DNA of 64,000 nucleotides from Narcine bancroftii (Eukaryota). The stretch lies in assembly GCF_036971445.1 (NCBI RefSeq), contig NC_091469.1:157418001-157482000 (forward strand). The letters are read 5' to 3'. Below the pieces are notes generated by a model that saw nothing but the letters and a program-made list of their open reading frames with translations, was not told the DNA's origin and made no database searches. Shown piece after piece: positions 7,331-57,729 of this stretch. Each line of letters begins with the position of its first letter. The first letter of the stretch is position 1. The position numbers and the translations under genes are program-made.

Positions 7331-8389
7331 CGGGCTGCACTCGACCCCAGACTTACATTTTTAACATCCTTCTTCCCTTATTCTCCAAAATCTGGGAGAA
7401 CCTGAACTCCAATTGGAGTCTGCCTCTTCTCCCTGTAGCCGCTTTCCTCTGGGTTCTCCACATCCCAAAGAAAAGCGGGTTGGTAGGTCAATTGGTAAGT
7501 ATGTCCCTTAAATTGTAATGTCCTGCCCCAAAAGGCAGTTGGTTGCTCCTCTTCTCTCTGCATGCCCCTCTCCCCACCCAAATGCCCCTTTCATCTGCTT
7601 GTCACACTCAAATCTTTTGGCCGGCATTGTCTGTGCCTTGAGTGCACGTTCACTGCTCTTAATCTGACAGCAACTTTGTCCCCTCTACCAAAATTCACAC
7701 CTCACACTTACCCATAGAGTCTCTTTCTCCTACTCTAGCCCATTTGCATTTCCTGCTTCTTGCCTGCCTTGTGGGAAGCAGAAGACGACACCCCTGTGTT
7801 GAGATGTAATTACACCACTAGGAGACCAGGAGTCATCCACCGCGATGACCTTGTATATGAAGCAGTCCAGAGATACAATCTAGCTTTCCAGGTTCGTCTT
7901 GCAGAGAGACAAGACCTCTTAGTGTACATATTAGTTTATTAAAGCTGTCTTATACTCACACTGCTGGTGTGGTTATTGGCAGTATAACCAGCAAGGTCTT
8001 TGGGCCTGTCACACCTTGGGCCTTGCCGCTGCTTCCACCATGAGGGGCTTTACCCACACCCTCCCTCTCAAAGTCAGGATGTCAGACACCAAGCCCACCA
8101 AGCAGGGCTAGGTGGGATCCCCGGTGTGTGCTCTCAGCCCAAATGCCTGCTCCCTGACCTACCAGCTGGGAACAGGAATTCCCAGATGGTGTTCACACCA
8201 CTGCTGGTGTTGGGCTGCACAACCTGATGGCTCCACTCTTTACCTGTTTTTGCTTCCACTTCAGAACGTCTTCGAATGTGAACAGTGCTGTAAATAACAG
8301 CATCTGAAGAATCTGGAAAGGACACAGATTTACTGCCTTAGCTCCAAAATCCCACTTTTTAGTTCTTTTTTTGTTACATTTTTGGTGGT

Positions 8390-9210
8390 AAATCTGGACC
8401 AGCTGGAAAAATGGACTGAAAAATGGCAAATGAAATGACAAGTGTGAGGTGTTGCATTTTGGAAGGACAAACCAAGAAAGGACGTACACGGTAATTGGTC
8501 GGGCACTGAGGAGTGGGGTAGAACAGAGGGATCTGGAAACACAGATACATAATTCCCTGAAAGTGGCATCACAGGTGGATAGAGTTGTAAAGAGAGCTTT
8601 TGGCATCTTGACCTTCATAAATCCAAGTATTGAGTGTAAGAGTTGAGATGTTATGGTAAAGTTCTATAAGACATTGGTGAGGTCCAATTGGAGAATTGGA
8701 TGCAGTTTTGGTCACCTAACTACAGGAAAAGATATCAATAAGATTGAAAGAATGTAGAGATTTACTGGGATGTTGTCTGGATTTCAGGAACTGAGTTACA
8801 GGGAAAGGTTAAACAGGTTTGATTTTATTCCCAGGAGCGTAGAAGAATAAGGGGAGATTTGATAGAAGTATTTAAAATTATGAGGGGGTTAAAGTAAATG
8901 TAGACAGATTTTTCCACTGAGGTTAAATGAGAAACAAACCATAGGGTGAAATGGAAACATTTTAGGTGAACATTAGAGGAAAACTTCTTCAGACAGAGAG
9001 TGGTGGGTGTATGGAACGAGCTGCCAGTTGATGAATGTGGACTCAATTTTAACATTTAAGAAGAATTTGGACAGGTACATGGATGGGAGAGGTATGGAGG
9101 GTGATGGACATGGTGCAGGTCAGTGGGACTGGGCAAAAAAAAATGGTTCGGCACAAAGAACCTAGAAGGGTCGAAGGGGCCTTTTTCTGTGCTGTAATGT
9201 ACTATGGTTC
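8390..9210 (+). mobile_element. CR1 LINE 3' fragment
   Basis: LHFGRTNQ..EQRDL..VDRVVKRAFG motifs and a CR1 tail. Confidence 0.85.
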
Positions 9211-34182: not shown

Positions 34183-35315
34183 TAAGGGGTGGTTAGCGTA
34201 GCGATTAACGTGATGCTATTACAGCGCCAGTTACCCAGGTTCAAATCCAACGCTGTCTGCAAGAAGTTTGTACATTCTGTGTTGGAGGACCCCCCCCCCC
34301 ACCAAGCTTGGGATTTGAACCCTGGTCCTGATGGCTGGCGCTGTAACTGCATTGCGCTAGCAGCTATGCTATCCATGTCACCCTAAGTTTGTATGTTCTC
34401 CCCGTGACTGCGTGGGTTTCCACTGGGTGCTCCGGTTTCCTCCCACCGTTCAAAAAGTACTGGGGCTGTAGGTCAATTGGGTATGTTACAGAGTCTAGAG
34501 GACCCCAAAAACCAGCAGTAATAGATATTCACCACAACACAGGGTTTCTTAAACAAAAGTAGTTTTTAATTATATTTGAACAAGAAAACAGAATTAAACT
34601 TTAACTTATTACTTAACCTACTTAACTAATCTACCTAACTACTCAATCCCCTCTCTAACACTAAGCGCAGGTGTGTGTAATGTCAATTTAAGATTAGAAA
34701 AGTTCTTTGGATCACAGTCCAATCTCACTAGTTGCAGGCAATTCTTGTTCTGTGCACAGAAGTTAGCATTAACTAAGTTCACCAGGCTTTGGTGCTTAAC
34801 AGGCAAATGGTTACCACTCAGGAGGTTTCTTCCTGGTTTTCAGAGAGAGATTCCTTTTCCAGGACATCCACAACTGATTGCTTCTCAATCAGTCTTGCTG
34901 ACAAAACTTGGCCCCTTCAGAGTTCTCCAGATGATCCTCTTTCTTTCAGGTCACCTTTCACACCACCAGCCTTCACCTTTGACCAAAGTTTGCCAGCTTT
35001 GTCCTTCTGGAACTGATTTCAGTCTCCTCTCTCTCTGTGTTTCACACCTTCCCTCCCTGAGAGCAAAATTGTTCTCCTCTGCCTGCAAAGATCACATGCT
35101 CTCCCAGGCAACCTGCTGTCCATGCTTTGTTGCCTCCTGCAAAAAGCATTCTGCAAAAGTTCTGCAAATATTCCGTTTTGAAATGTGTGAGTGAGAAAGC
35201 TGCTCTAACAATTCCTCCCAAACCACCTCTAAATACTCTGTTACAGGTGAACTTGGATGGCACAGACTCATGGGCCAGAAGGGTCTGTTACCATGCTCTA
35301 TCTCTAATTTTTTAA
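34183..35315 (+). mobile_element. V-SINE-like element interrupted by an inverted SINE head (about 34290-34385) and a solo LTR
   Basis: A/B-box-like head ggttagcgtagcg..ggttcaaatcc; core gttctccccgtgactgcgtgggttt; the tail resumes at 35246. Confidence 0.7.
34484..35245. mobile_element. Solo LTR (762 bp)
   Basis: TGTTAC...GTTACA ends; 4-bp TSD GGTA/GGTG; the SINE is continuous across it. Confidence 0.75.
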
Positions 35316-35736: not shown

Positions 35737-35928
35737 GTATTTCCAGGGAGATGAACACTGAGGAGTGGATCAGGACCAGGGTTCGAATCCCATGCTGTCT
35801 GTATTTCCAGGGAGATGAACACTGAGGGGTGGATCAGGACCAGGGTTTGAATCCCATGCTGTCTGTATTTCCAGGGAGTTGAACACTGAGGGGTGGATCA
35901 GGACCAGGGTTCAAATCCCATGCTGTCT
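35737..35928 (+). repeat. 3 x 64-bp tandem repeat containing a SINE B-box, followed by SINE body to about 36105
   Basis: Units start at 35737, 35801 and 35865; each has GGTTCGAATCC or a one-base variant. Confidence 0.92.
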
Positions 35929-36142
35929 GTAAGGACTTTGTATGCTCTCCCTGTGTCTGCGTGGGTTTTCCCCTGGGGCTTCGGTTTCCAGTCACTATTC
36001 AAAAATGTACCGGGATGTAGGTTAATTGGGTGTAAATTGGGTGGCACAGACTCATGGGCTGAAATGGCCTGTTACAATGCTGTATGTCTAAAATCCAAAA
36101 AGATCTAAGTAACAAAGCTACCAAAGCCCTATACATTCAGAG

Positions 36143-39864: not shown

Positions 39865-42800
39865 TGTGTGGCTGGAGATGGAAGGGTTAAATGTTGGTGG
39901 AAAACATGTTTAGATATATATAAAACAACTATTGAGGACAGCTGAGTGTGGTGAAACCACTTATATATGTAAATACCCTTGACCTTATATGCTCAACCCT
40001 GCTCGCACTGGCCGGCTTGTGACTCCTTCCCTTTATTCCCCATAAAGGCTGTCATGCCACAGCCCTGCCCCCAGTTTGAGTCCGGGTCAGTGTGAGGCAC
40101 AAACTCAAGGGATGCTGTCCATCTCCAGCTAATAAAAGCCTTCAATTCCAGTACTTCAGTCTCTTGGTTAATTAACTGTGTATCAATTTTATTAGTTAGA
40201 TTTTTGCTTCTTCGGAACATGGACAAGTTTCTGAAACTTGATCGCCTAGAAATCAACCCACGAGAACCCAATGGCCAAGGGATTCGCTCTCTGGCATCGC
40301 TATTTCAAAAGATTCCTTGCACCCTCTGCAGGCACGATTTAGGATAAGTACCATCTACTGCTCTCATATATTGGGCATCAGGTCTACCAGATGGTCCGGG
40401 ACTGCTGAACCCATGGAGAAGCCATGGACATTCTAAAAGACCAGTATAAGGTCCAGGTGAATGAGGTCTATACGTGGCACGTGCTCCACTCACGCAGGCA
40501 GAGACCCAGAGAGACATTCAATGACTTTGTCAGGGCCCCACAAGAGCTTGTAAGGGACTGTAACTGCCAAGCTGGTGAGTACTGAGCAACATGCGCAGCT
40601 ACTGATGAGAGATGCCTGTGTGGCGGGCGCCTGCCCTGACTACGTGAGGTGAAGGCTGCTCAAACAGAAACAATTGAGCCTACCTCAAACCATTGAGCTG
40701 GTGAATACCCTAGAATGGGCCATCCACAACGCTGAATCATTCTCCAGCGAGCACGCGGCCACCTCATGGGGGACTCGGGCGTCACCATCTTGGGGAGGCG
40801 GGATCATAAACCTCCCACTCTGACCTGACATCCACCGCTATCAGTGACCTCCCGATGTGCTATTTCTGCAGGCAGGGCAAGCACCCGAGGAAACGTTGCC
40901 CTGCCAAAGACGCCACCTGCGCCAATTGCGGGTAAAAGGGACACTTTACGAAGGTATGTAAGTCAAAGCAGAGCCCTTAACCCAGCAGCGCCGCATGCGA
41001 ACAGGGACCACCACCTCTGGGGAACAGGGATGCCCACGGAAGTGTGCTACAGAGACCAAGAACTGCTATGGTGTCACTTCCGTCTTCTCCCACGTCACTT
41101 CCAGTAATGACGCCACGTCACTTTCTCCTTCTCTTCTGGTGAGTGACGATGGAGCCACTTGCGAGCCATGGGGGCTGCCATCACAACCGCCATCTTGTCA
41201 GACGATTGGAAGACAATGGAACCCCTTGGACAACGAGATGACGCTGGCATAAGTAACCCTGGATCAATGCCGACCACATCAACTCTCCATGGCCATGATG
41301 AGCATCCAGGTAAAAAGCCACCCCATCTTGTGCCTATTTGACAGTGGAAGGACTGAGAGCTTCATTCACCCTTACACAGCATGGCAGTACTCCATGGACA
41401 TGCAGCCCATAAAATTCAGCGTCTCCCTAGCCTCACAGGCCAAATCGGCAAAGGTTCGAGAGGGAGCTGCACAGTAACCCTGATGGTCCAAGGCATTGTA
41501 TACACCAACTTTACGCGACTTGTCCTGCCACAGCTTTGTGCGCCCGTCATCCCGGGGTTGGACTTCCAATGTAACTTAAAGAATGTCACTATAGAGTATG
41601 ACGGGCCCCACCCTCCCCTCACGGCCTGTAATGAGCAATTCATGAACTAGGCGCTGCCCCCCTTCTCACAATGCTGACCAGCAGCCCCAGGCCATGCCAC
41701 CATGCTCTGGATCCACCCCTCCCCCTACTCCTGTTCACCAATCTCACCCCTGATGGTAAGCCTATTGGCAATACAGCGCCGAGGACAGGGCACTCATTAG
41801 GTCAGACACCTCCTCACTGAAGGGGTGATAGAACAAAGTACAAGCACCTGAAGAGCCCAAGTGGTAGTAGTCAAGAGCGGGGAGAAACACCAGGTAGTCA
41901 TAGATTACTTCCAGACCATCAACAGGTTCACACAGCTAGACACCTACCCTTTACCTGGCTTTGCTGACATGATGAATCAGATCACACAATACAGGGTCTT
42001 TTCCACCATCAACCTCAAGTCGGCATACCACCAACTCCACATTTGCCCTGAGGACCGCCAGTACACCACCTTTGAGGCGGATGGCTGACTGTACTATTTT
42101 CCTAGAGTCCCTTTTGGGGTCACAAATGGAGTGTCTGTCTTCCAAGGGAGATGGATCAGATGGTGGATGAACATGGGATGTGGGCCACCTTCCCATACCT
42201 TGACAACATGACTATCTGCAGCCATGACCAGCAGGTCACAACAGGAACCTCCAGAAATTCCTACACACCGTGAAGTGCCTTAACCTGACATATAATACAG
42301 GGAAGTGTGTCTTCAGCACATATCGCCTGACCATACTAGGCTGCGTGGTGAATAATGGAGTCATCACCCCCGCCCCTGACTGCATGTGCCCATTATTAGA
42401 ACTCCCCCTCCCGCACTGCCTCAAGGCCCTGAAAAGGTGCCTGGGCTTTTTCTCTTACTATTCTCATTTGGTCCCCAACTACACAGAGAAGGCCAGTCCC
42501 CTCAACAAAGCCACCATTTTCCCCCACGGCAGAAGTCCGCGAGGCATTTGACTGAATCACAGCCAACTTTTCTCTGGCCGCCACACTACACCAGGTGGGC
42601 AGGCCTGTTGCATTTTTTTTCACACACCCTCCAGGGCCCTGAGATCTTGGCACTCTTCCATCGAGAAAGAGGCACAGGCAATCGTTGAAGCAAAAAGGCA
42701 CTGGAGGCATTACCTTGCCGGAAAGCATTTTACCCTCCTGACTGACCAACAGGCAGCCGCCTTCATGTTTAACAACCAGCAGTGGGGTAAAGCAATAAAA

Positions 42801-49356: not shown

Positions 49357-49471
49357 AAATGCCCAGCAGATCATGTGGTGTCCGTGGAGAGCAGAGTCAG
49401 TATCGCAGATGGGTCACTTCCAGTAAAACTGTCCTGCTCTTCACGGACACCACATGATCTGCTGGGCATTT
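49357..49471. repeat. 38-bp inverted repeat (37/38 match), 39-nt loop
   Basis: Arms at 49357-49394 and 49434-49471. Confidence 0.9.
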
Positions 49472-49712
49472 TGGGCAGCACAGTCGGTGCCACGCTGTTA
49501 CAGCGCCAGTGGCCGGTACGGGGGTGCGAATTCCGCGCTGTCTGCAAGGAGTTTGTAGGTTCTCTTCGTGTCTGCATGGGTTTCCTCTGGAGGCTCTGTT
49601 TGCCTCCCACCCTTCAAAACCATAGTGAGGGTTGTGGGTCATTTGTGTGTAATTGGGCTTTTGGGCCAAAAGGGCCTGTTACCGTGCTGCATGTCTTAAA
49701 TTTTAAATTCTA
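49472..49712 (+). mobile_element. V-SINE-like element
   Basis: ctgttacagcgccag..gctgtctgcaaggagtttgta core shared with the copy at 34183. Confidence 0.7.
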
Positions 49713-50709: not shown

Positions 50710-52963
50710 AAAGGCTCATTTAGGTAGTAAAAAGGGATTGAATGCAAGGAGGCCTTGCTGTGTGGTTACAGAATGCAGAGGTTGGTTGTCAATGGAGGTG
50801 AATGGTGTTCCACAGGGATCTCATCTCACCTGGGACCCCTCCTGTATGTGTTTTTTATAAATGTCCTGGATGCGATGATCCTAACCCGAAACTAAGCTAC
50901 TCCATCACCACCAAAAGATCTGCCTGTAGTAATGAAAAACCACCATTTACTCACACGAAATGCAATGTGAACACTGTGGAGTGTTTCCAGCACTTTTGTG
51001 TATTTGCACGGCCAATCAACTACCTTCAATTTCATGTAAGTTATTTGTTTGTAGGACACACAAAGACACAATGCTAATCCCTTCAGATTTCTCTTCAGAA
51101 AACACCCCTTAACCACGACCCTCAGACTTCCATCATCAAGCAAATTTTGGATTGTTTGCCAACAATCACGTGCTTGTACCTTCGACATCTGCCTATCACT
51201 TGGGATTTTGTCAAAGGTCCATGTGAACCATGACCACCATGCCGTCCCAATTGATTTCCAGAGTTAACTCTTAACAACTTTTTCCCCCAAGCCACCAGGC
51301 TCTTGAATTCCCAGAACATATGTAGTACCATGGACTTTTACTGTATATGTCTTAATATTTTAATATTTCATTGTGTTTAACTTCTATTCTAATTTACATT
51401 TATTTATATCTACTCCGTGGCCCTGGAGAAACGCTAGCTGTCTTCACTAAAGAAGCATGGGATGAGTGTCAAATAAAGGTGACTTGACTGGACTTGAAAA
51501 ACTAATTTGTGAGGTAGTATTTTCCCTGCAGAAGAACATTGTGACTTCATCTAATTAGTCCCTACATTTCCAAGAGAGCAGAAATCCTGTCTCAGTGCTT
51601 TTTCCAACAATTTCCCTGTCATTGATAGAGCTCCCTGGGCTCTACTTCCTGGCCTATCCTTTCTGATCTGTGGTTCACACCAATCCAAAACATGTCTATT
51701 TGAGCCCCACCAATCTCCTCCCTTCCTTCTCATAGCACTGTGGGATAGATCCTCTCAATCCCTGGGGATTTATCCATCTTGATGCCAATATGTCCGATAA
51801 TACTTCCTCGACCAGATGTGTTCCAGAGTATCAGCGTACCCCTCCTTGAACTTTCCATCCTACATGTCCTTCCTGGTGAATGCCGCGATCCTGTTCATGT
51901 TCCCTGGTTGATATCCACTTTCAGGACTAACGCATTCCCCCGTAACCTCTTCCTTTGAATGGACTAATAGAGAATTTTTGGATTCTCCTCCATCCTATTT
52001 ATCAGGGGCTCTGTTGCTCTCTTTTTGTCCTCATAACGTGGCAAAGAAAAAGACCCTTTGGCCCCAGTTCCTTCTGCACATCCTGGTCAAATGCACACGA
52101 TAGATATTCCTCTATTCCTCATAACCAAGCATATCGTGCAGTCTCTTAAATGCTGCTCTCATATCTGCTTCTTCCATTTTCCCCGGCAGTCCATTCCAGG
52201 AACCAAGCACTGGGTAAAAATACCTCGCACTGCACATCTCCTTTAAACCCCCTCCCCTCACCTCCAAATGCATAATTGGACACGGTTACACCGGGAGAAA
52301 GGTTCTATCTACCTGATCTGTGCCTCTTCTAATTATATAAACATTTATCAGAGCATCTCTCAACATCTGACACTCCAGAGAAAACCGCCTGTTTGTCCAA
52401 TCTGTTCCCATCCCCCCGATCCAGGTTGCACTCTGGTAAAGGAGTGAAACACGCAAGTCTGCAGACGCTGCGCTTGTAGTGAAAATACACATAAATTCTG
52501 GAGGATGTCCTGTAGATCCTTCGTGACCGGCCGAGTTCCTCCAACGTTCTGTGTTAGCACTCTGGTAAATCTCCTCTGCACCCTTTCGAAAGCCATCCCA
52601 TCCTTCCTGCAGTTGGCGAACGGAATTTCATGCAATTCTCAAAACGCAGCCTCACCAAATGTTATATTGTTGCAACATGACTTGCATCCAAACCAAGACT
52701 TTTATTAGCAAAAGACAGGAGCTCTTCACAGATGGCCGACCAGTCCGGAATGATCCGACCTGGCTAGGGACACAACCCTTTAAGGCCCAGACAATAGTCG
52801 TGGCTTAGCTCTCAGCCAATCGCTGTAAGCACAGTCTAGATACTGTAACTATATACACTATATACATTGGTGATAGATCTGTACTATCACATTCACCCCT
52901 TCTTGGAGAATTGGCCCTGGGAAAAAAAAACAAAAACGAGGGAGAATGAAAGGAAGGGGTAGG

Positions 52964-55692
52964 TCAAGGACTGTAGCGGTCAGGGGGTCTGACCATCCGG
53001 CGTGACCGCCGTGGTGCCGGGATTGGGGTCGCTGGAGTGGTGTCGCCAGTGGGCTCGTCGGGTGCGACTGCTCCGTCGCTCAATTCCCCAGTCGTGTTGT
53101 CGGCAGGGTGGCCCGGGTCATTGGGGTGCTGTTGGTCTTTCTGTTGCGGCACGGGGCCTGGAGAATAAGGAGTTGGGGGGTTTGCTGGGTCTACCGCGTC
53201 CTGAGCTAGGTCCCGCACCGAAACAGTGTCCTCCCGCCCGTCTGGGAACTCAACGTAGGCGTAATGTGGGTTTGCGTGGAGTAGAGTCACTCGGTCGACC
53301 AAGGGGTCGTTCTTTGAGTGCCGGACGTTGCGTCGCAAAAGGACGGGGCCAGGGACGGTGAGCCATGCCGGTACAGTGGTTCCTGATTCGGATTTCCTCG
53401 GGAAAAGGAACATCCTTTCGTGGGGGGTGGCATTTCTTGCAGTACATAGGAGGGAGCGGATGGAGTGTAAAGCACTAGTGAGAACCTCCTGCCAGTGAGA
53501 GGTGGGGAGACCTTTAGACCGGAGAGCCAGTGTAACCGCTCTCCATATGGTGGCATTCTCCCTCTCGACCTGGCCGTTACCGCGTGGGTTATAGCTGGTG
53601 GTCCTGCTTGAAGCAATACCACACTCCAGAAGGTACTGTTGCAGCTCTGCACTCATGAATGAGGACCCCCTATCACTGTGGATGGAATTGGGGTACCCGA
53701 AGATTGTGAAAATACTGTGAAGGGCCTGTATCACTGAGGTGGCAGTGGTGTCTGGGCAGGCCACAGCGAATGGGAAGAGGGAGTACTCGTCGATGGCCGT
53801 AAGGATGTAGGTATTACGGTTGGTCGACGGTAGGGGCCCCTTAAAGTCTACGCTAAGATGCTCGAAGGGGCGGGTGCCTTTGATAACGTGGGATTCAGCG
53901 CACACCGAACAGGCTCGGGTCATGGAGCGGATCTCCTCGACTGTGTAGGGTAAGTTGCGCGCCTTGACAAAGTGAGCAAACCTAGTGACCCCTGGATGAC
54001 AGAGCGCCTCATGGAGTTTCCGTAGTCTGTCCATCTGTATGCTGGCGCACGTCCCCCTGGAGAGCGCGTCAGGCGGGTCGTTGAGCTTACCAGGCCGGTA
54101 CAGGATGTCATAGTTAAAGGTGGAGAGTTCGATTCTCCATCTGGCGATTTTGTCGTTTTTTATCTTACCACGCTGGGTGTTGCTGAACATGAAGGAGACC
54201 GCGCGTTGATCAGTCAACAGTGTAAAGCGCCTCCCAGCAAGGTAATGTCTCCAACGACACACTGCTTCAACTATGGCCTGGGCCTCCTTCTTGATCGAGG
54301 AGTGTCTACTCTCCGGACCCTGGAAGGTTCTGGAGAAGAAGGCTACAGCCCGACCGGCCTGGTTCAAGGTGGCTGCCAGGGCGAAGTCGGATGCATCGCT
54401 CTCGACTTGTAATGGGACAGACTCATCAATCGCGTGCAGCGTCGCAGCAGCGATGTCAGATTTGATTCGATCGAAAGCCGCTGTGGCTTCGGTCGAGAGG
54501 GGAAAAGAGGTGGTCTTGATAAGAGGACGCGCCTTGTCGGTGTAGTGTGGAACCCATTGGGCGTAATACGAGAAAAGGCCCAGGCAACGTTTGAGTCCAT
54601 TAGGGGACGCATGCGGTCAGGATCTGGCATGACTATCCCGTTCTCCACCACACAACCTAGAATAGCGAGTCATGTGGTCCGGAAGATACACTTGTCCAAA
54701 TTGTAAGTCAGGTTTAGCTGACGGGCAGTTTGAAGAAATTTGTCTAGGTTGGCGTCGTGGTCCTGCACGTCATGGCCTCAGATGGTGATATTGTCAAGAT
54801 ACGGGAAGGTAGCGGTTAGCCCGTTCTGGTCCACCATCCTGTCCATTTCCCGCTGGAAGACTGCGACATCATTCGTGACCCCGAATGGTACCCTGAGAAA
54901 TTAATATAGCCGCCCATTCGCTTCAAAGGCCGTGAATGGTCGGTCCTCGCAGCGGATCGGAAACTGGTGGTAGGCCGAACGTAGGTCAATAGTGGAGAAA
55001 ATGCGGTATTGGGCGATCTGGTTCACCACATCCGTGATGCGTGGCAGGGGGTACGCATCCAGGAGCGTGAAGCGGTTAATGGTCTGGCTATACTCGACCA
55101 CCATCCGTAGTTTTTCCCCATTCTTGACAACCACCACCTGGGCTCTCCAGGGGCTTGAACTGGGTTCGATGATGCCCTCATCCAGCAATCTACGCACCTC
55201 ACTCCTAATGAATTGCCTGTTTTCGTAACTATATTGCCGACTTTTGGTGACCACAGGCTTCCAGCCAGGGGTGAGGTTTGCGAAGAGTGCTGGCGGGGCA
55301 ATCCGGAGTGTGGAAAGGCCGCAGGATTGGCCCCGGGGCATGGGGGCAGGTTGCTCGGGTGCTTCGGGAGTGGGGCGATGGCAGACCGAGAGGGGGGCGT
55401 GGGGTCCCCCAAAGTGGAGGGACACCATTTGGAACTGACACTGGAAGTCTAATCCCAGCAACACTGGGGCGCACAATTGGGGAAGGACGAATAATTTGAA
55501 GTGGGTGACCGTCACGCCCTGTACTTCCAGCGTGGCGATGCAATACCCCTTTATCCCAGTCGAGTGCGACCTCGTAGTGGGGATAATGTCAAGTCCCCAA
55601 CGGAGGGCCAGATCTGGCTGGATAAAACTGTCAGTTGACCCAGAGTCAAATAAGCAATTGGTGTAGTGTCCATACACTTTAATCAGTTCCAT
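52964..55692 (-). pseudogene. Gypsy pol (PR-RT-RNaseH-IN), broken by stops and frameshifts
   Basis: LFDSGS, YPLP, DLRSAYHQ, LLTDQ, DALSR, DFKGP, HSDRG and GNGQVER across ORFs 54901-55692, 54364-54651 and 52964-54367. Confidence 0.9.
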
Positions 55693-55743
55693 TGCTCTGG
55701 TGAGGGGATGAGAGCATTGCTGGTTTAGTGTTATTGAAGCAGT

Positions 55744-57054
55744 TTACAGGGGAGTTTTGCGCGATGACGTCACGCACTGAGATGACGTCACGCAACGGGA
55801 TGACGTCACGTAACGGGATGCCGTAGTCAACGCTTGAGGAGCAGGTTGGAGGACCTCCCGGAAGTGCTGTTGTGGCGGCGTTGGCGGGTGAATGGTAAGT
55901 AGTGGGGTTTGTAGTTGCTCGCGATTGGCGGTGGGTAGGTCGTTGATCGCGGCGGTCGGGCCCTGGCGGTCGTCAGCGATGGACGCTAGGGTGAGCATCT
56001 GGTTGGCCGCGGGGTTGGCTGTGGCGGCGGCAGCAGCGGCGGTAGCGTCGGCCCCGGGAGTGGCTGTGGCGGCGGCAGCAGCGGCGGTAGTGTCGAGTGT
56101 TCCGCATGGGGGCGAGAGGCGGGCCATCACCATGGTTGCGAGGGTGGGTTGCCCCTTCCGGGTTTGGCGTCTCCGTGACGTCAGGCGTTGCCGTGCAGGG
56201 GAGCCCTCGCTCTCATTGGACGAGAGCTCTGGGGAAGAAGAGTTTGAATGGGATAGTGGCGATTGGGCTTCACACGAGGCACTGTGTTTGCCGGCGGCCA
56301 TTTTAGACCTGCAGACTGCAGCAAAGTGGCCTTTTTTAAGGCACTTCTGGCACTTGGCTTTTCTTGCTGGGCACTGGGACCTGCTGTGCTTGTCCCTCCC
56401 GCAGAAATAACATTTTGGGTTCGCACGGGTCAGTGTAGCAGCAGCCAACAGGCCGTCAGTATCTCGGGGGGTGGTAGGGTAGAAGGGCACTCTATTCACA
56501 TCAGAACGTGGGTTCCAGTCCCTCGAGAACTCAGTGGACTTTAAGGCTGCATCCTCCATTGTGATTGCAATCCGGGCCACGTCCTCTAGTTTTTCTACCC
56601 CTTGCTCGAGCAAGAGCAGCCTCACTTCGTTCGATCGGAGCCCGGCCACATAGGCATCCCGGACGAGATCGTTTGTGATCTCGGCAGCAGTTTTGTCCAC
56701 ACAGTTACAGTCCTTGCCCAATGCCTTTAATACTTGTAAATATGCCCTGCTGGACTCGCTGGGCTGTTGCTTCCTCGAAGCAAGCACGAGCCGGGCATTA
56801 ACTCTGTTCACCGGTTGATTATACAGTCCTTTCAGTACCTTTATGGCTGCGGTGTAAGTGGTCTCATCCTGGATGTTCTCGTAGACTCTCAAGGACACCA
56901 TAGACAGCAATGCTGTTAGACGCTGGTTATCCTCCTCTACCTGAATGAATCTCAGGAAGTTTTCAAAGTTCAGCAGCCAGAAGTTAAAGGCTTTGAAGGC
57001 TGTAGCTGACTGTGGGTCGATATCAAGTTTTTCTGACCGAGTCAAACGCTCCAT
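55744..57054 (-). CDS. Gypsy gag (two CCHC zinc knuckles, Ala-rich C-terminus)
   Basis: MERLTRSEKLDIDP..; CYFCGRDKHSRSQC and CQKCLKKGHFAAVC; ATG at 57054 just after the LTR. Confidence 0.85.
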   Translation of the reverse strand: MERLTRSEKLDIDPQSATAFKAFNFWLLNFENFLRFIQVEEDNQRLTALLSMVSLRVYENIQDETTYTAAIKVLKGLYNQPVNRVNARLVLASRKQQPSESSRAYLQVLKALGKDCNCVDKTAAEITNDLVRDAYVAGLRSNEVRLLLLEQGVEKLEDVARIAITMEDAALKSTEFSRDWNPRSDVNRVPFYPTTPRDTDGLLAAATLTRANPKCYFCGRDKHSRSQCPARKAKCQKCLKKGHFAAVCRSKMAAGKHSASCEAQSPLSHSNSSSPELSSNESEGSPARQRLTSRRRQTRKGQPTLATMVMARLSPPCGTLDTTAAAAAATATPGADATAAAAAATANPAANQMLTLASIADDRQGPTAAINDLPTANREQLQTPLLTIHPPTPPQQHFREVLQPAPQALTTASRYVTSSRCVTSSQCVTSSRKTPL

Positions 57055-57729
57055 CCCTTCCAAAAAAAATTCTTTTGCTAATAAAATTGTAGAGCTCGTC
57101 GAAAGAATCAAACACTTGTTGATCCAAACCAAGGCTTTTATTAGCAAAAGACAAGAGCTCTTCACAGGTGGCCGACCAGTCTGGAATGATCCAACCTGGC
57201 TAGGGACACAACTCTTTACGGTCCAGACAGTAGGTGTGGCTTAGCTCTCAGCCAATCGCTGCAAGCACAGTCTAGATACAGTAACTATATACACTATGTA
57301 CATTGGTGATAGATCTGTACGATCACAATGCCCACTTTCAAGGAGCTAAAAATCAGGACCCCCCGTTCCTTCTGCACATCAATGTTTATAAGAATCCTGT
57401 CGTTGTACTTTCCCCTGACCTTTAACCTTCCAAAGAGCTGCATCTTACTCTTGCCCCGATTAAATTCCGTCTGTCTTTAACGGATCTATTTTAGAATTCT
57501 TTGATAGCTCTCTGCACTGCTCACAAGTTCACATTTTGTGTCATCTGCAAACTTTCCTAATCCACCTACCTCCTTCTTAATCCAATCATTTCTCTACATT
57601 ACCAACAATAGGCGTCTACTGAACGTTTACATTTTGTTTCACAGATGGGACTCAGTTCTCACCTTCTATTCTTCTCTGATGTACACAGGCATGGACAAAT
57701 CTCCTGCGTCTGCTTGGATATACCCGATG

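Follow-up and report, generated by a model that had tools for sequence, protein, structure and literature searches.

The stretch of DNA analysed here, called the window below, comprises 64,000 nt of the genome of the ray Narcine bancroftii (contig NC_091469.1, positions 157,418,001 to 157,482,000), and all coordinates are counted from its first letter. Its minus strand carries a copy of a long terminal repeat (LTR) retrotransposon, element B, and its plus strand carries a member of a second family, element A (Table 1). Element B has the hallmarks of the Ty3/Gypsy group (Metaviridae), i.e., LTRs with TG..CA ends, a polypurine tract and coding parts in the order gag, protease, reverse transcriptase (RT), RNase H and integrase. 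The subject of this work is a helix that the RNA of such elements can form between a segment of the 5' LTR and the sequence immediately following this LTR, i.e., the position at which the primer of reverse transcription is expected to anneal.

The LTR limits of element B were fixed independently with contigs of four public sequencing runs aligned to it (Logan contigs, which by their nature contain no transcript starts or ends and no poly(A) tails). In run X1, 229 contigs switch to unlike sequence exactly at 57088 and others do so at 52891, which corresponds to 57327 in the 5' LTR. In one DNA run as many as 22,293 contigs match B, with the depth over the LTR being ~7 times the internal depth, and the family of element B is extremely abundant in the ray genome. 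Copy B itself is old and dead, with LTRs that are 9% diverged, disrupted reading frames and a truncated 3' LTR. Four small runs (X6-X9), guessed to be RNA, contain 36-40% of the words of this dead copy (window 52600-57420), and in two of them, X7 and X9, the family is matched at high depth when contigs are aligned to B; the family may be transcribed, or these runs may be DNA.

On the minus strand, the 5' LTR of B ends with ...CTCTACA at 57088 and is followed by a spacer consisting of a single A (57087) and then by TTTTATTAGCAAAAGA (57086-57071). An inverted-repeat search found that this post-LTR arm (57071-57086) and a segment inside the LTR, hereafter the LTR arm (57136-57151), are complementary at 100% of their 16 nt, with 49 nt between them. 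The 16-mer, with up to two mismatches allowed, is present three times in the 64-kb window: once in each arm and once in the 3' LTR (52700-52715). The expectation from shuffled sequence is 0.08. At a minimum length of 10 bp and loop sizes of 28-90 nt, the entire 64 kb contain only 11 perfect stems. The minimum-free-energy RNA fold of 57040-57200 includes the stem (-46.6 kcal/mol, z = -2.07). No complement of the arm was found downstream of the 3' LTR of B and, therefore, the local hairpin can form at the 5' end only. The first-pass annotation of the window had described the perfect 16-bp stem with its 49-nt loop 1 nt past the 5' LTR, an AAUAAA within the LTR arm, the restriction of the stem to the 5' LTR and the lack of a UGG-type primer-binding site in B. 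The coordinates and the complementarity were borne out, AATAAA is located at 57142-57137, the arm copy in the 3' LTR has no partner downstream, and the last point holds beyond B, as described next.

Between the LTR end and the gag ATG, no TGG-type site was found in B, in A or in the sampled relatives. The sole TGG in this interval is the one at the gag start codon, where the bases following the ATG vary with the codons. The gag ATG lies within ~45 nt of the post-LTR arm in the sampled elements (16 nt past the arm in B and directly after it in several families), which leaves no room for another primer site. The 12-nt tRNA-Leu site of the Steamer element, TGGTGTCAGAAG, is absent after the LTRs of all sampled elements. 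Among the metagenome loci searched for this site, only L063 (~8359) carries a match, TGGTGTTAGAAG, which is one base off the published sequence and immediately follows the end, ...ACGACA, of an unrelated degenerate neighbouring LTR element at 8343-8470.

The relatives were gathered from metagenome contigs by integrase homology and not by the motif itself, which yielded 80 loci; among viral contigs, which were also scanned, there was no relative. These are compact elements of ~4.0-4.3 kb with LTRs of 125-245 bp, as determined by self-comparison. At every locus with a readable LTR end the LTR terminates with CA, almost always as ..ACA or ..TCA, one base follows, and then come 13-19 bases that read as the reverse complement of a stretch of the LTR located 31-68 nt upstream. 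A stem of at least 12 bp was present in 18 of the 28 loci that span the 5' region, 1876-1949 nt upstream of the integrase anchor and, in one case, 2302 nt upstream; the rest had no detectable LTR pair or were decayed or rearranged. For comparison we used 21 representatives, i.e., A, B and 19 elements from the metagenome contigs, with integrase identity going down to ~40%. The representatives include close relatives, so that counts given below are counts of sequences and not of events; ~14 distinct arm sequences are present among them. Minimum-free-energy folds contain the stem in 20 of the 21. Immediately next to the LTR arm, most invertebrate families have a short (A/G)CCU...AGG hairpin, which is weak or absent in A and B. 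This hairpin may be the short repeat used in strand transfer or a counterpart of the U5-IR-like stem of Tf1.

Two observations concern the arrangement of individual relatives. On contig L022 (138-246) the post-LTR arm (CACAA-TTTAACCAACT) is present twice in tandem, with 56 nt from start to start, and both copies are complementary to the same LTR arm. Six contigs (L013, L014, L022, L023, L058 and L074) are circularly permuted, with the LTR downstream of integrase continuing into the primer-binding site and gag, which either results from the assembly of a repeated LTR or reflects one-LTR circles or tandem copies.

Covariation of the two arms, which the first-pass annotation had proposed to check among family copies, was found across the lineage in an alignment of the 21 representatives (A3) over a helix of 18 pairs. 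Of the cells of this helix, 84.5% are paired compared to 64.5 +/- 1.7 in shuffled controls. Both sides are altered in 16 of the 18 pairs (11.5 +/- 1.2 after shuffling), and cells altered on both sides number 80 compared to 28.8 +/- 4.0, a value reached in 0 of 500 shuffles. When the partners are slid by 1-3 columns, only 18-30 such cells are obtained. The misalignment of L023, one of the representatives in A3, makes the observed pairing lower and not higher. The arms of one and the same representative pair at 11-13 of the inner 13 positions, whereas arms taken from different representatives pair at 8.7 on average. The stem is a real, conserved structural feature and not a product of chance.

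Element A shows the same layout in the window itself. Its stem has 14 positions with one mismatch and one G-U pair, a loop of 49 nt, and the gag ATG at 40219. Compared to the stem of B, two compensatory changes are present (U-A to A-U and U-A to C-G). The RT fragments of the two elements are 64% identical, and A is an independent element of a different family.

We consider it likely that the helix is the duplex of primer and primer-binding site of a self-primed LTR retrotransposon, as suggested by the position and the sequence of its arms. The boundary of an LTR is set by the start of minus-strand synthesis, and thus the primer must anneal immediately downstream of U5, which is where the post-LTR arm sits. 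The site of each family is tracked only by the LTR of the same family, and this is a signature of self-priming as known from Tf1 and Tf2, in which the first 11 nt of the RNA pair with the primer-binding site and an RNase H cut releases the primer (PMC7175516, PMC5341516). By analogy, the LTR segment of the genomic RNA, ending with ..UAAA and positioned close to the transcript's 5' end or at it, would fold back over the loop of 31-68 nt (49 nt in B), formed by the remaining R and U5, and pair with the 13-19 nt that start 1 nt past the LTR. Cleavage would then free a 3'-OH, the extension of which over the spacer and U5/R would give minus-strand strong-stop DNA. This DNA would be transferred to the 3' copy of the brief interval that separates the cut from the poly(A) site. 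Later, the plus strand would copy the primer back into the primer-binding site and in this way keep the two arms matched. Such copying back would also explain why, in young copies, the match is perfect as far as an outer edge and stops there sharply. Should the arm's outer edge be the transcription start, the system would be fully Tf1-like, with an R region of ~30-40 nt.

Several points weigh against this interpretation. The evidence consists of sequence comparison. The taxonomic breadth of the stem rests on the window and on metagenome contigs of unknown hosts. Reading the table of representatives by eye, we saw no initiator-like pattern at the outer edge of the arm, and no initiator or TATA motif was consistently present at a fixed distance from the arm in these representatives. 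In A and B, TATA-like motifs are found no closer than ~100 nt upstream of the arm, and if transcription starts at such a distance, the primer would need a second trimming step, which is not needed in Tf1. Finally, broader Steamer-like relatives carry tRNA-Leu or tRNA-Asn sites (PMC8905726, PMC11046912), so that the trait is not universal in this wider group; both priming modes seem to occur among related animal elements.

One alternative is that the helix is a regulatory RNA structure only, which occludes the poly(A) signal of the 5' LTR or controls packaging or translation, with reverse transcription being primed in some other way. The sequence of the LTR arm provides some grounds for this. 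A canonical hexamer, AAUAAA or AUUAAA, is present at the arm end and fully inside the helix in 10 of the 21 representatives, including A and B, and a one-base variant (GUUAAA, UUUAAA or CAUAAA) is present in seven more; moreover, the partner of the arm exists only downstream of the 5' LTR. There is also a precedent, since in HIV-1 a hairpin that sequesters AAUAAA in its stem represses the use of the 5' poly(A) site, and lengthening this hairpin blocks polyadenylation (PMC2645353). The HIV-1 hairpin, however, is located wholly inside R and forms at both RNA ends, whereas here one of the arms lies outside of the LTR, making the structure specific for the 5' end, and a role in polyadenylation is a candidate one. 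We regard a purely regulatory helix as improbable: there is no alternative primer site between the LTR and gag, and the LTR boundary itself requires priming 1 nt before the arm. Nothing comparable to the hexamer is found at the arm end in four representatives, three representatives that lack a canonical hexamer in the arm have one in the loop instead, and pairing reaches 8-12 nt past the hexamer in all.

Occlusion of the poly(A) signal may nevertheless accompany self-priming. The first-pass annotation had proposed that one helix serves as self-primer, as poly(A) occluder, or both. Its first part is strongly supported by the location of the arm at the primer-binding position, the missing tRNA site and the co-varying arms in the 21 representatives, while its second part finds only partial support, a canonical hexamer being present in the arm of some representatives. 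For elements with such a hexamer in the arm, among them A and B, we tentatively suggest, with somewhat less than even confidence, that the helix also hides the poly(A) signal, and does so in the 5' LTR only. In B, the loop contains CA dinucleotides 16-20 nt past AATAAA and a GT-rich stretch (57115-57109), a spacing that would be expected at a vertebrate poly(A) site and from which the site may be placed here. As judged from the arm sequences, occlusion may reasonably be considered as a second role in A, B and families like them but cannot account for the helix in general. The end of the truncated 3' LTR (52686), located 15 nt after AATAAA, was considered as a sign of the poly(A) site and rejected, since the flanking repeat sequence described below is also short by ~80 nt.

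No more probable than a purely regulatory helix is a pairing of the post-LTR site with the arm copy in the 3' LTR, which would cyclise the RNA over a long range or hold two co-packaged RNAs together, perhaps with the 3' end acting as the primer. The 3' LTR does contain the same arm, which the RNA would include even with a transcription start downstream of the 5' arm, and covariation cannot distinguish between the two arm copies. A local hairpin with a loop of 31-68 nt would be kinetically favoured, however, and the length of the loop is constrained. The small hairpin that adjoins the arm in most invertebrate families also suggests a single compact local fold, and a whole 4-kb RNA used as a primer would give no simple route for plus-strand transfer.

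Considerably less probable is an RNA primer of host origin, be it half of a tRNA, a tRNA fragment or some other small RNA, with the match in the LTR being incidental. Copia-type elements prime with internal segments of tRNA, and thus a missing TGG alone does not exclude tRNA (PMC6317226); the related Steamer elements use tRNA-Leu (PMC8905726). Yet the arms differ between A and B, two families in one genome, and across the sample, and only ~4 nt (TTTA/TTAA) are common to all post-LTR arms, while each LTR tracks its own site; with so little shared, priming by a conserved host RNA is excluded. Nor do the arms, being A/U-rich, resemble tRNA stems, and no tRNA gene was found in the 64-kb window. 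A chance inverted repeat without function, made likelier by A/T-rich sequence, can practically be dismissed given three matches against 0.08 in shuffles and the same geometry with compensatory changes in 21 representatives.

Table 1. Features of elements B and A in the window and of the hairpin found in their relatives.
Feature	Position	Strand	Basis or remark
Element B, 5' LTR, 240 bp, TGTGAT...CTCTACA (TG...CA)	57088..57327	minus	91% identity to 3' LTR over 216 nt; contig breakpoints
Element B, LTR arm TCTTTTGCTAATAAAA, candidate self-primer	57136..57151 (57151-57136)	minus	contains AATAAA 57142-57137
Element B, loop, 49 nt: remaining R + U5 + 1-nt spacer A (57087)	57087..57135	minus	sequence reading
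Element B, post-LTR arm TTTTATTAGCAAAAGA, putative primer-binding site of self-complementary type	57071..57086	minus	1 nt after LTR terminal CA; without TGG
Element B, gag frame, ATG 57054-57052, two CCHC zinc knuckles, distal part degenerate	55744..57054	minus	translation
Element B, protease and start of RT, broken frame	54901..55692	minus	Pfam gag-asp_proteas 1.7e-07, RVT_1 4.8e-06
Element B, RNase H and integrase frame, 467 aa, without chromodomain	52964..54367	minus	Pfam RT_RNaseH 1e-18, rve 8.5e-18
Element B, polypurine tract AAGAAGGGGTGAA	52892..52904	minus	directly adjoins 3' LTR start
Element B, 3' LTR, truncated at 3' end; same arm at 52700-52715, no partner downstream	52686..52891	minus	alignment to 5' LTR
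Element A, LTR arm TCCAGCTAATAAAA	40124..40137	plus	sequence
Element A, post-LTR arm TTTTATTAGTTAGA	40187..40200	plus	spacer A, 1 nt, after LTR CA (40184-40185)
Relatives, (A/G)CCU...AGG hairpin	alignment A3 columns 21-36; e.g. L001 8055-8070, L053 8063-8076		folds

The comparison with Tf1/sushi elements made in the first-pass annotation is apt for the mechanism, given the self-complementary site, and fails for membership. No chromodomain (Pfam) was found in the integrase frame of B or in the intact relatives L003, L004, P0001 and P0004, and its absence from intact relatives places the lineage outside of the Tf1/sushi chromoviruses. In L003, a single frame of 1238 aa contains protease, RT, RNase H and integrase in this order. 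The integrase frame of B has 91% identity with a protein from Narcine bancroftii, 60-73% with proteins from Hypanus sabinus, and 50-60% with insect, mollusc, cnidarian, crinoid and flatworm proteins. A Hydra protein that shares a 90% cluster with one of the hits (P0118) is named K02A2.6-like, an annotation linked to Steamer-like elements within the Mag lineage's C-clade (PMC8905726). The gag frame of B had no Pfam match; two CCHC knuckles, the number present in B, are usual for gag of Mag elements (PMC2577118). Judging from these sequence features, the lineage probably belongs to the Mag lineage.

The elements described here and the Tf1/Tf2 elements of Schizosaccharomyces pombe both lack a tRNA site and have, past the 5' LTR, a site complementary to their own LTR-derived RNA, which folds back over R/U5; Tf1/Tf2 have an additional stem-loop beside the duplex (PMC7175516, PMC5341516), of which the small hairpin found here, weak in A and B, is reminiscent. 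The differences are that the Tf1 duplex consists of 11 bp and involves the very first bases of the mRNA, whereas here it has 13-19 bp and the LTR arm would lie at the start of the transcript or near it; that the arm here, unlike in Tf1, usually ends in a hexamer resembling the poly(A) signal; and that Tf1 is a fungal chromovirus, while we deal with an animal lineage without a chromodomain. For vertebrate Tf1/sushi elements, Tcn1-like elements and the plant copia element TAR, self-priming was predicted, as here, from the complementarity of the primer-binding site and the LTR (PMC6317226), but these groups belong to the chromoviruses or to copia. Steamer, SURL and Steamer-like elements of the Mag C-clade are similar to the elements studied here in their size (~4-5 kb), short LTRs (177-187 bp there and ~125-250 bp here), a single or overlapping gag-pol frame, and wide distribution in aquatic animals (PMC8905726). 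However, Steamer has its tRNA-Leu site right after the LTR and MchSLE1 has a tRNA-Asn site (PMC8905726, PMC11046912), and neither is present at this position in the elements sampled here. In the literature searched, self-priming is credited only to Tf1/sushi, Tcn1 and plant TAR (PMC6317226, PMC3601003), with no relevant link to Mag or the C-clade; key older papers lay outside of this search, and a prior description is possible. Within these bounds, the helix is most likely a self-primer duplex, a variation on a known mechanism in a lineage for which no prior description was found.

A more far-reaching scenario combines the two roles. In it, a Gypsy lineage that is widespread in animals and has no chromodomain (K02A2.6-like and related to Mag, with members in rays and, from unknown hosts, in metagenome contigs) would have lost tRNA priming independently of the Tf1/sushi chromoviruses. 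Its LTR arm would be both the primer of reverse transcription and the poly(A) signal, hidden by pairing at the 5' end of the RNA and directing polyadenylation from the unpaired 3' copy. We consider this scenario in its entirety rather unlikely. If self-priming is true for this lineage, tRNA independence arose more than once or is older than thought, and the elements would escape those host defences that are aimed at tRNA-type sites, e.g., 3' tRNA fragments (PMC7472051). The complementarity also provides a simple rule for the annotation of a very large class of elements for which no primer-binding site is reported by LTR-finding programs. How very short LTRs distinguish between the 5' and the 3' poly(A) site is a question to which the overlap with the poly(A) signal suggests a testable answer.

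Element B is inserted in a remnant of the RT of a CR1/L2-like long interspersed element (LINE), which is present on the minus strand at 57338-57600 (FADDTK, upstream) and 52360-52685 (ERVQRRFTR, downstream). Approximately 80 nt of the LINE and the final ~35-50 nt of the 3' LTR of B are missing together, which points to a later deletion that took out the junction; as a result, no target-site duplication is readable. Elsewhere in the window, a perfect 30-bp inverted repeat with a 55-nt loop (49357-49386 / 49442-49471) lies beside a sequence resembling short interspersed elements (SINEs; 49507-49698) and is possibly a small hairpin-forming transposon. Further SINE-like repeats are located at 34222-34482 and 35737-36091, the latter with three tandem 64-nt units at 35737-35931. 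We take the SINE-like repeats of the window to be of the tRNA-derived kind common in cartilaginous fishes.
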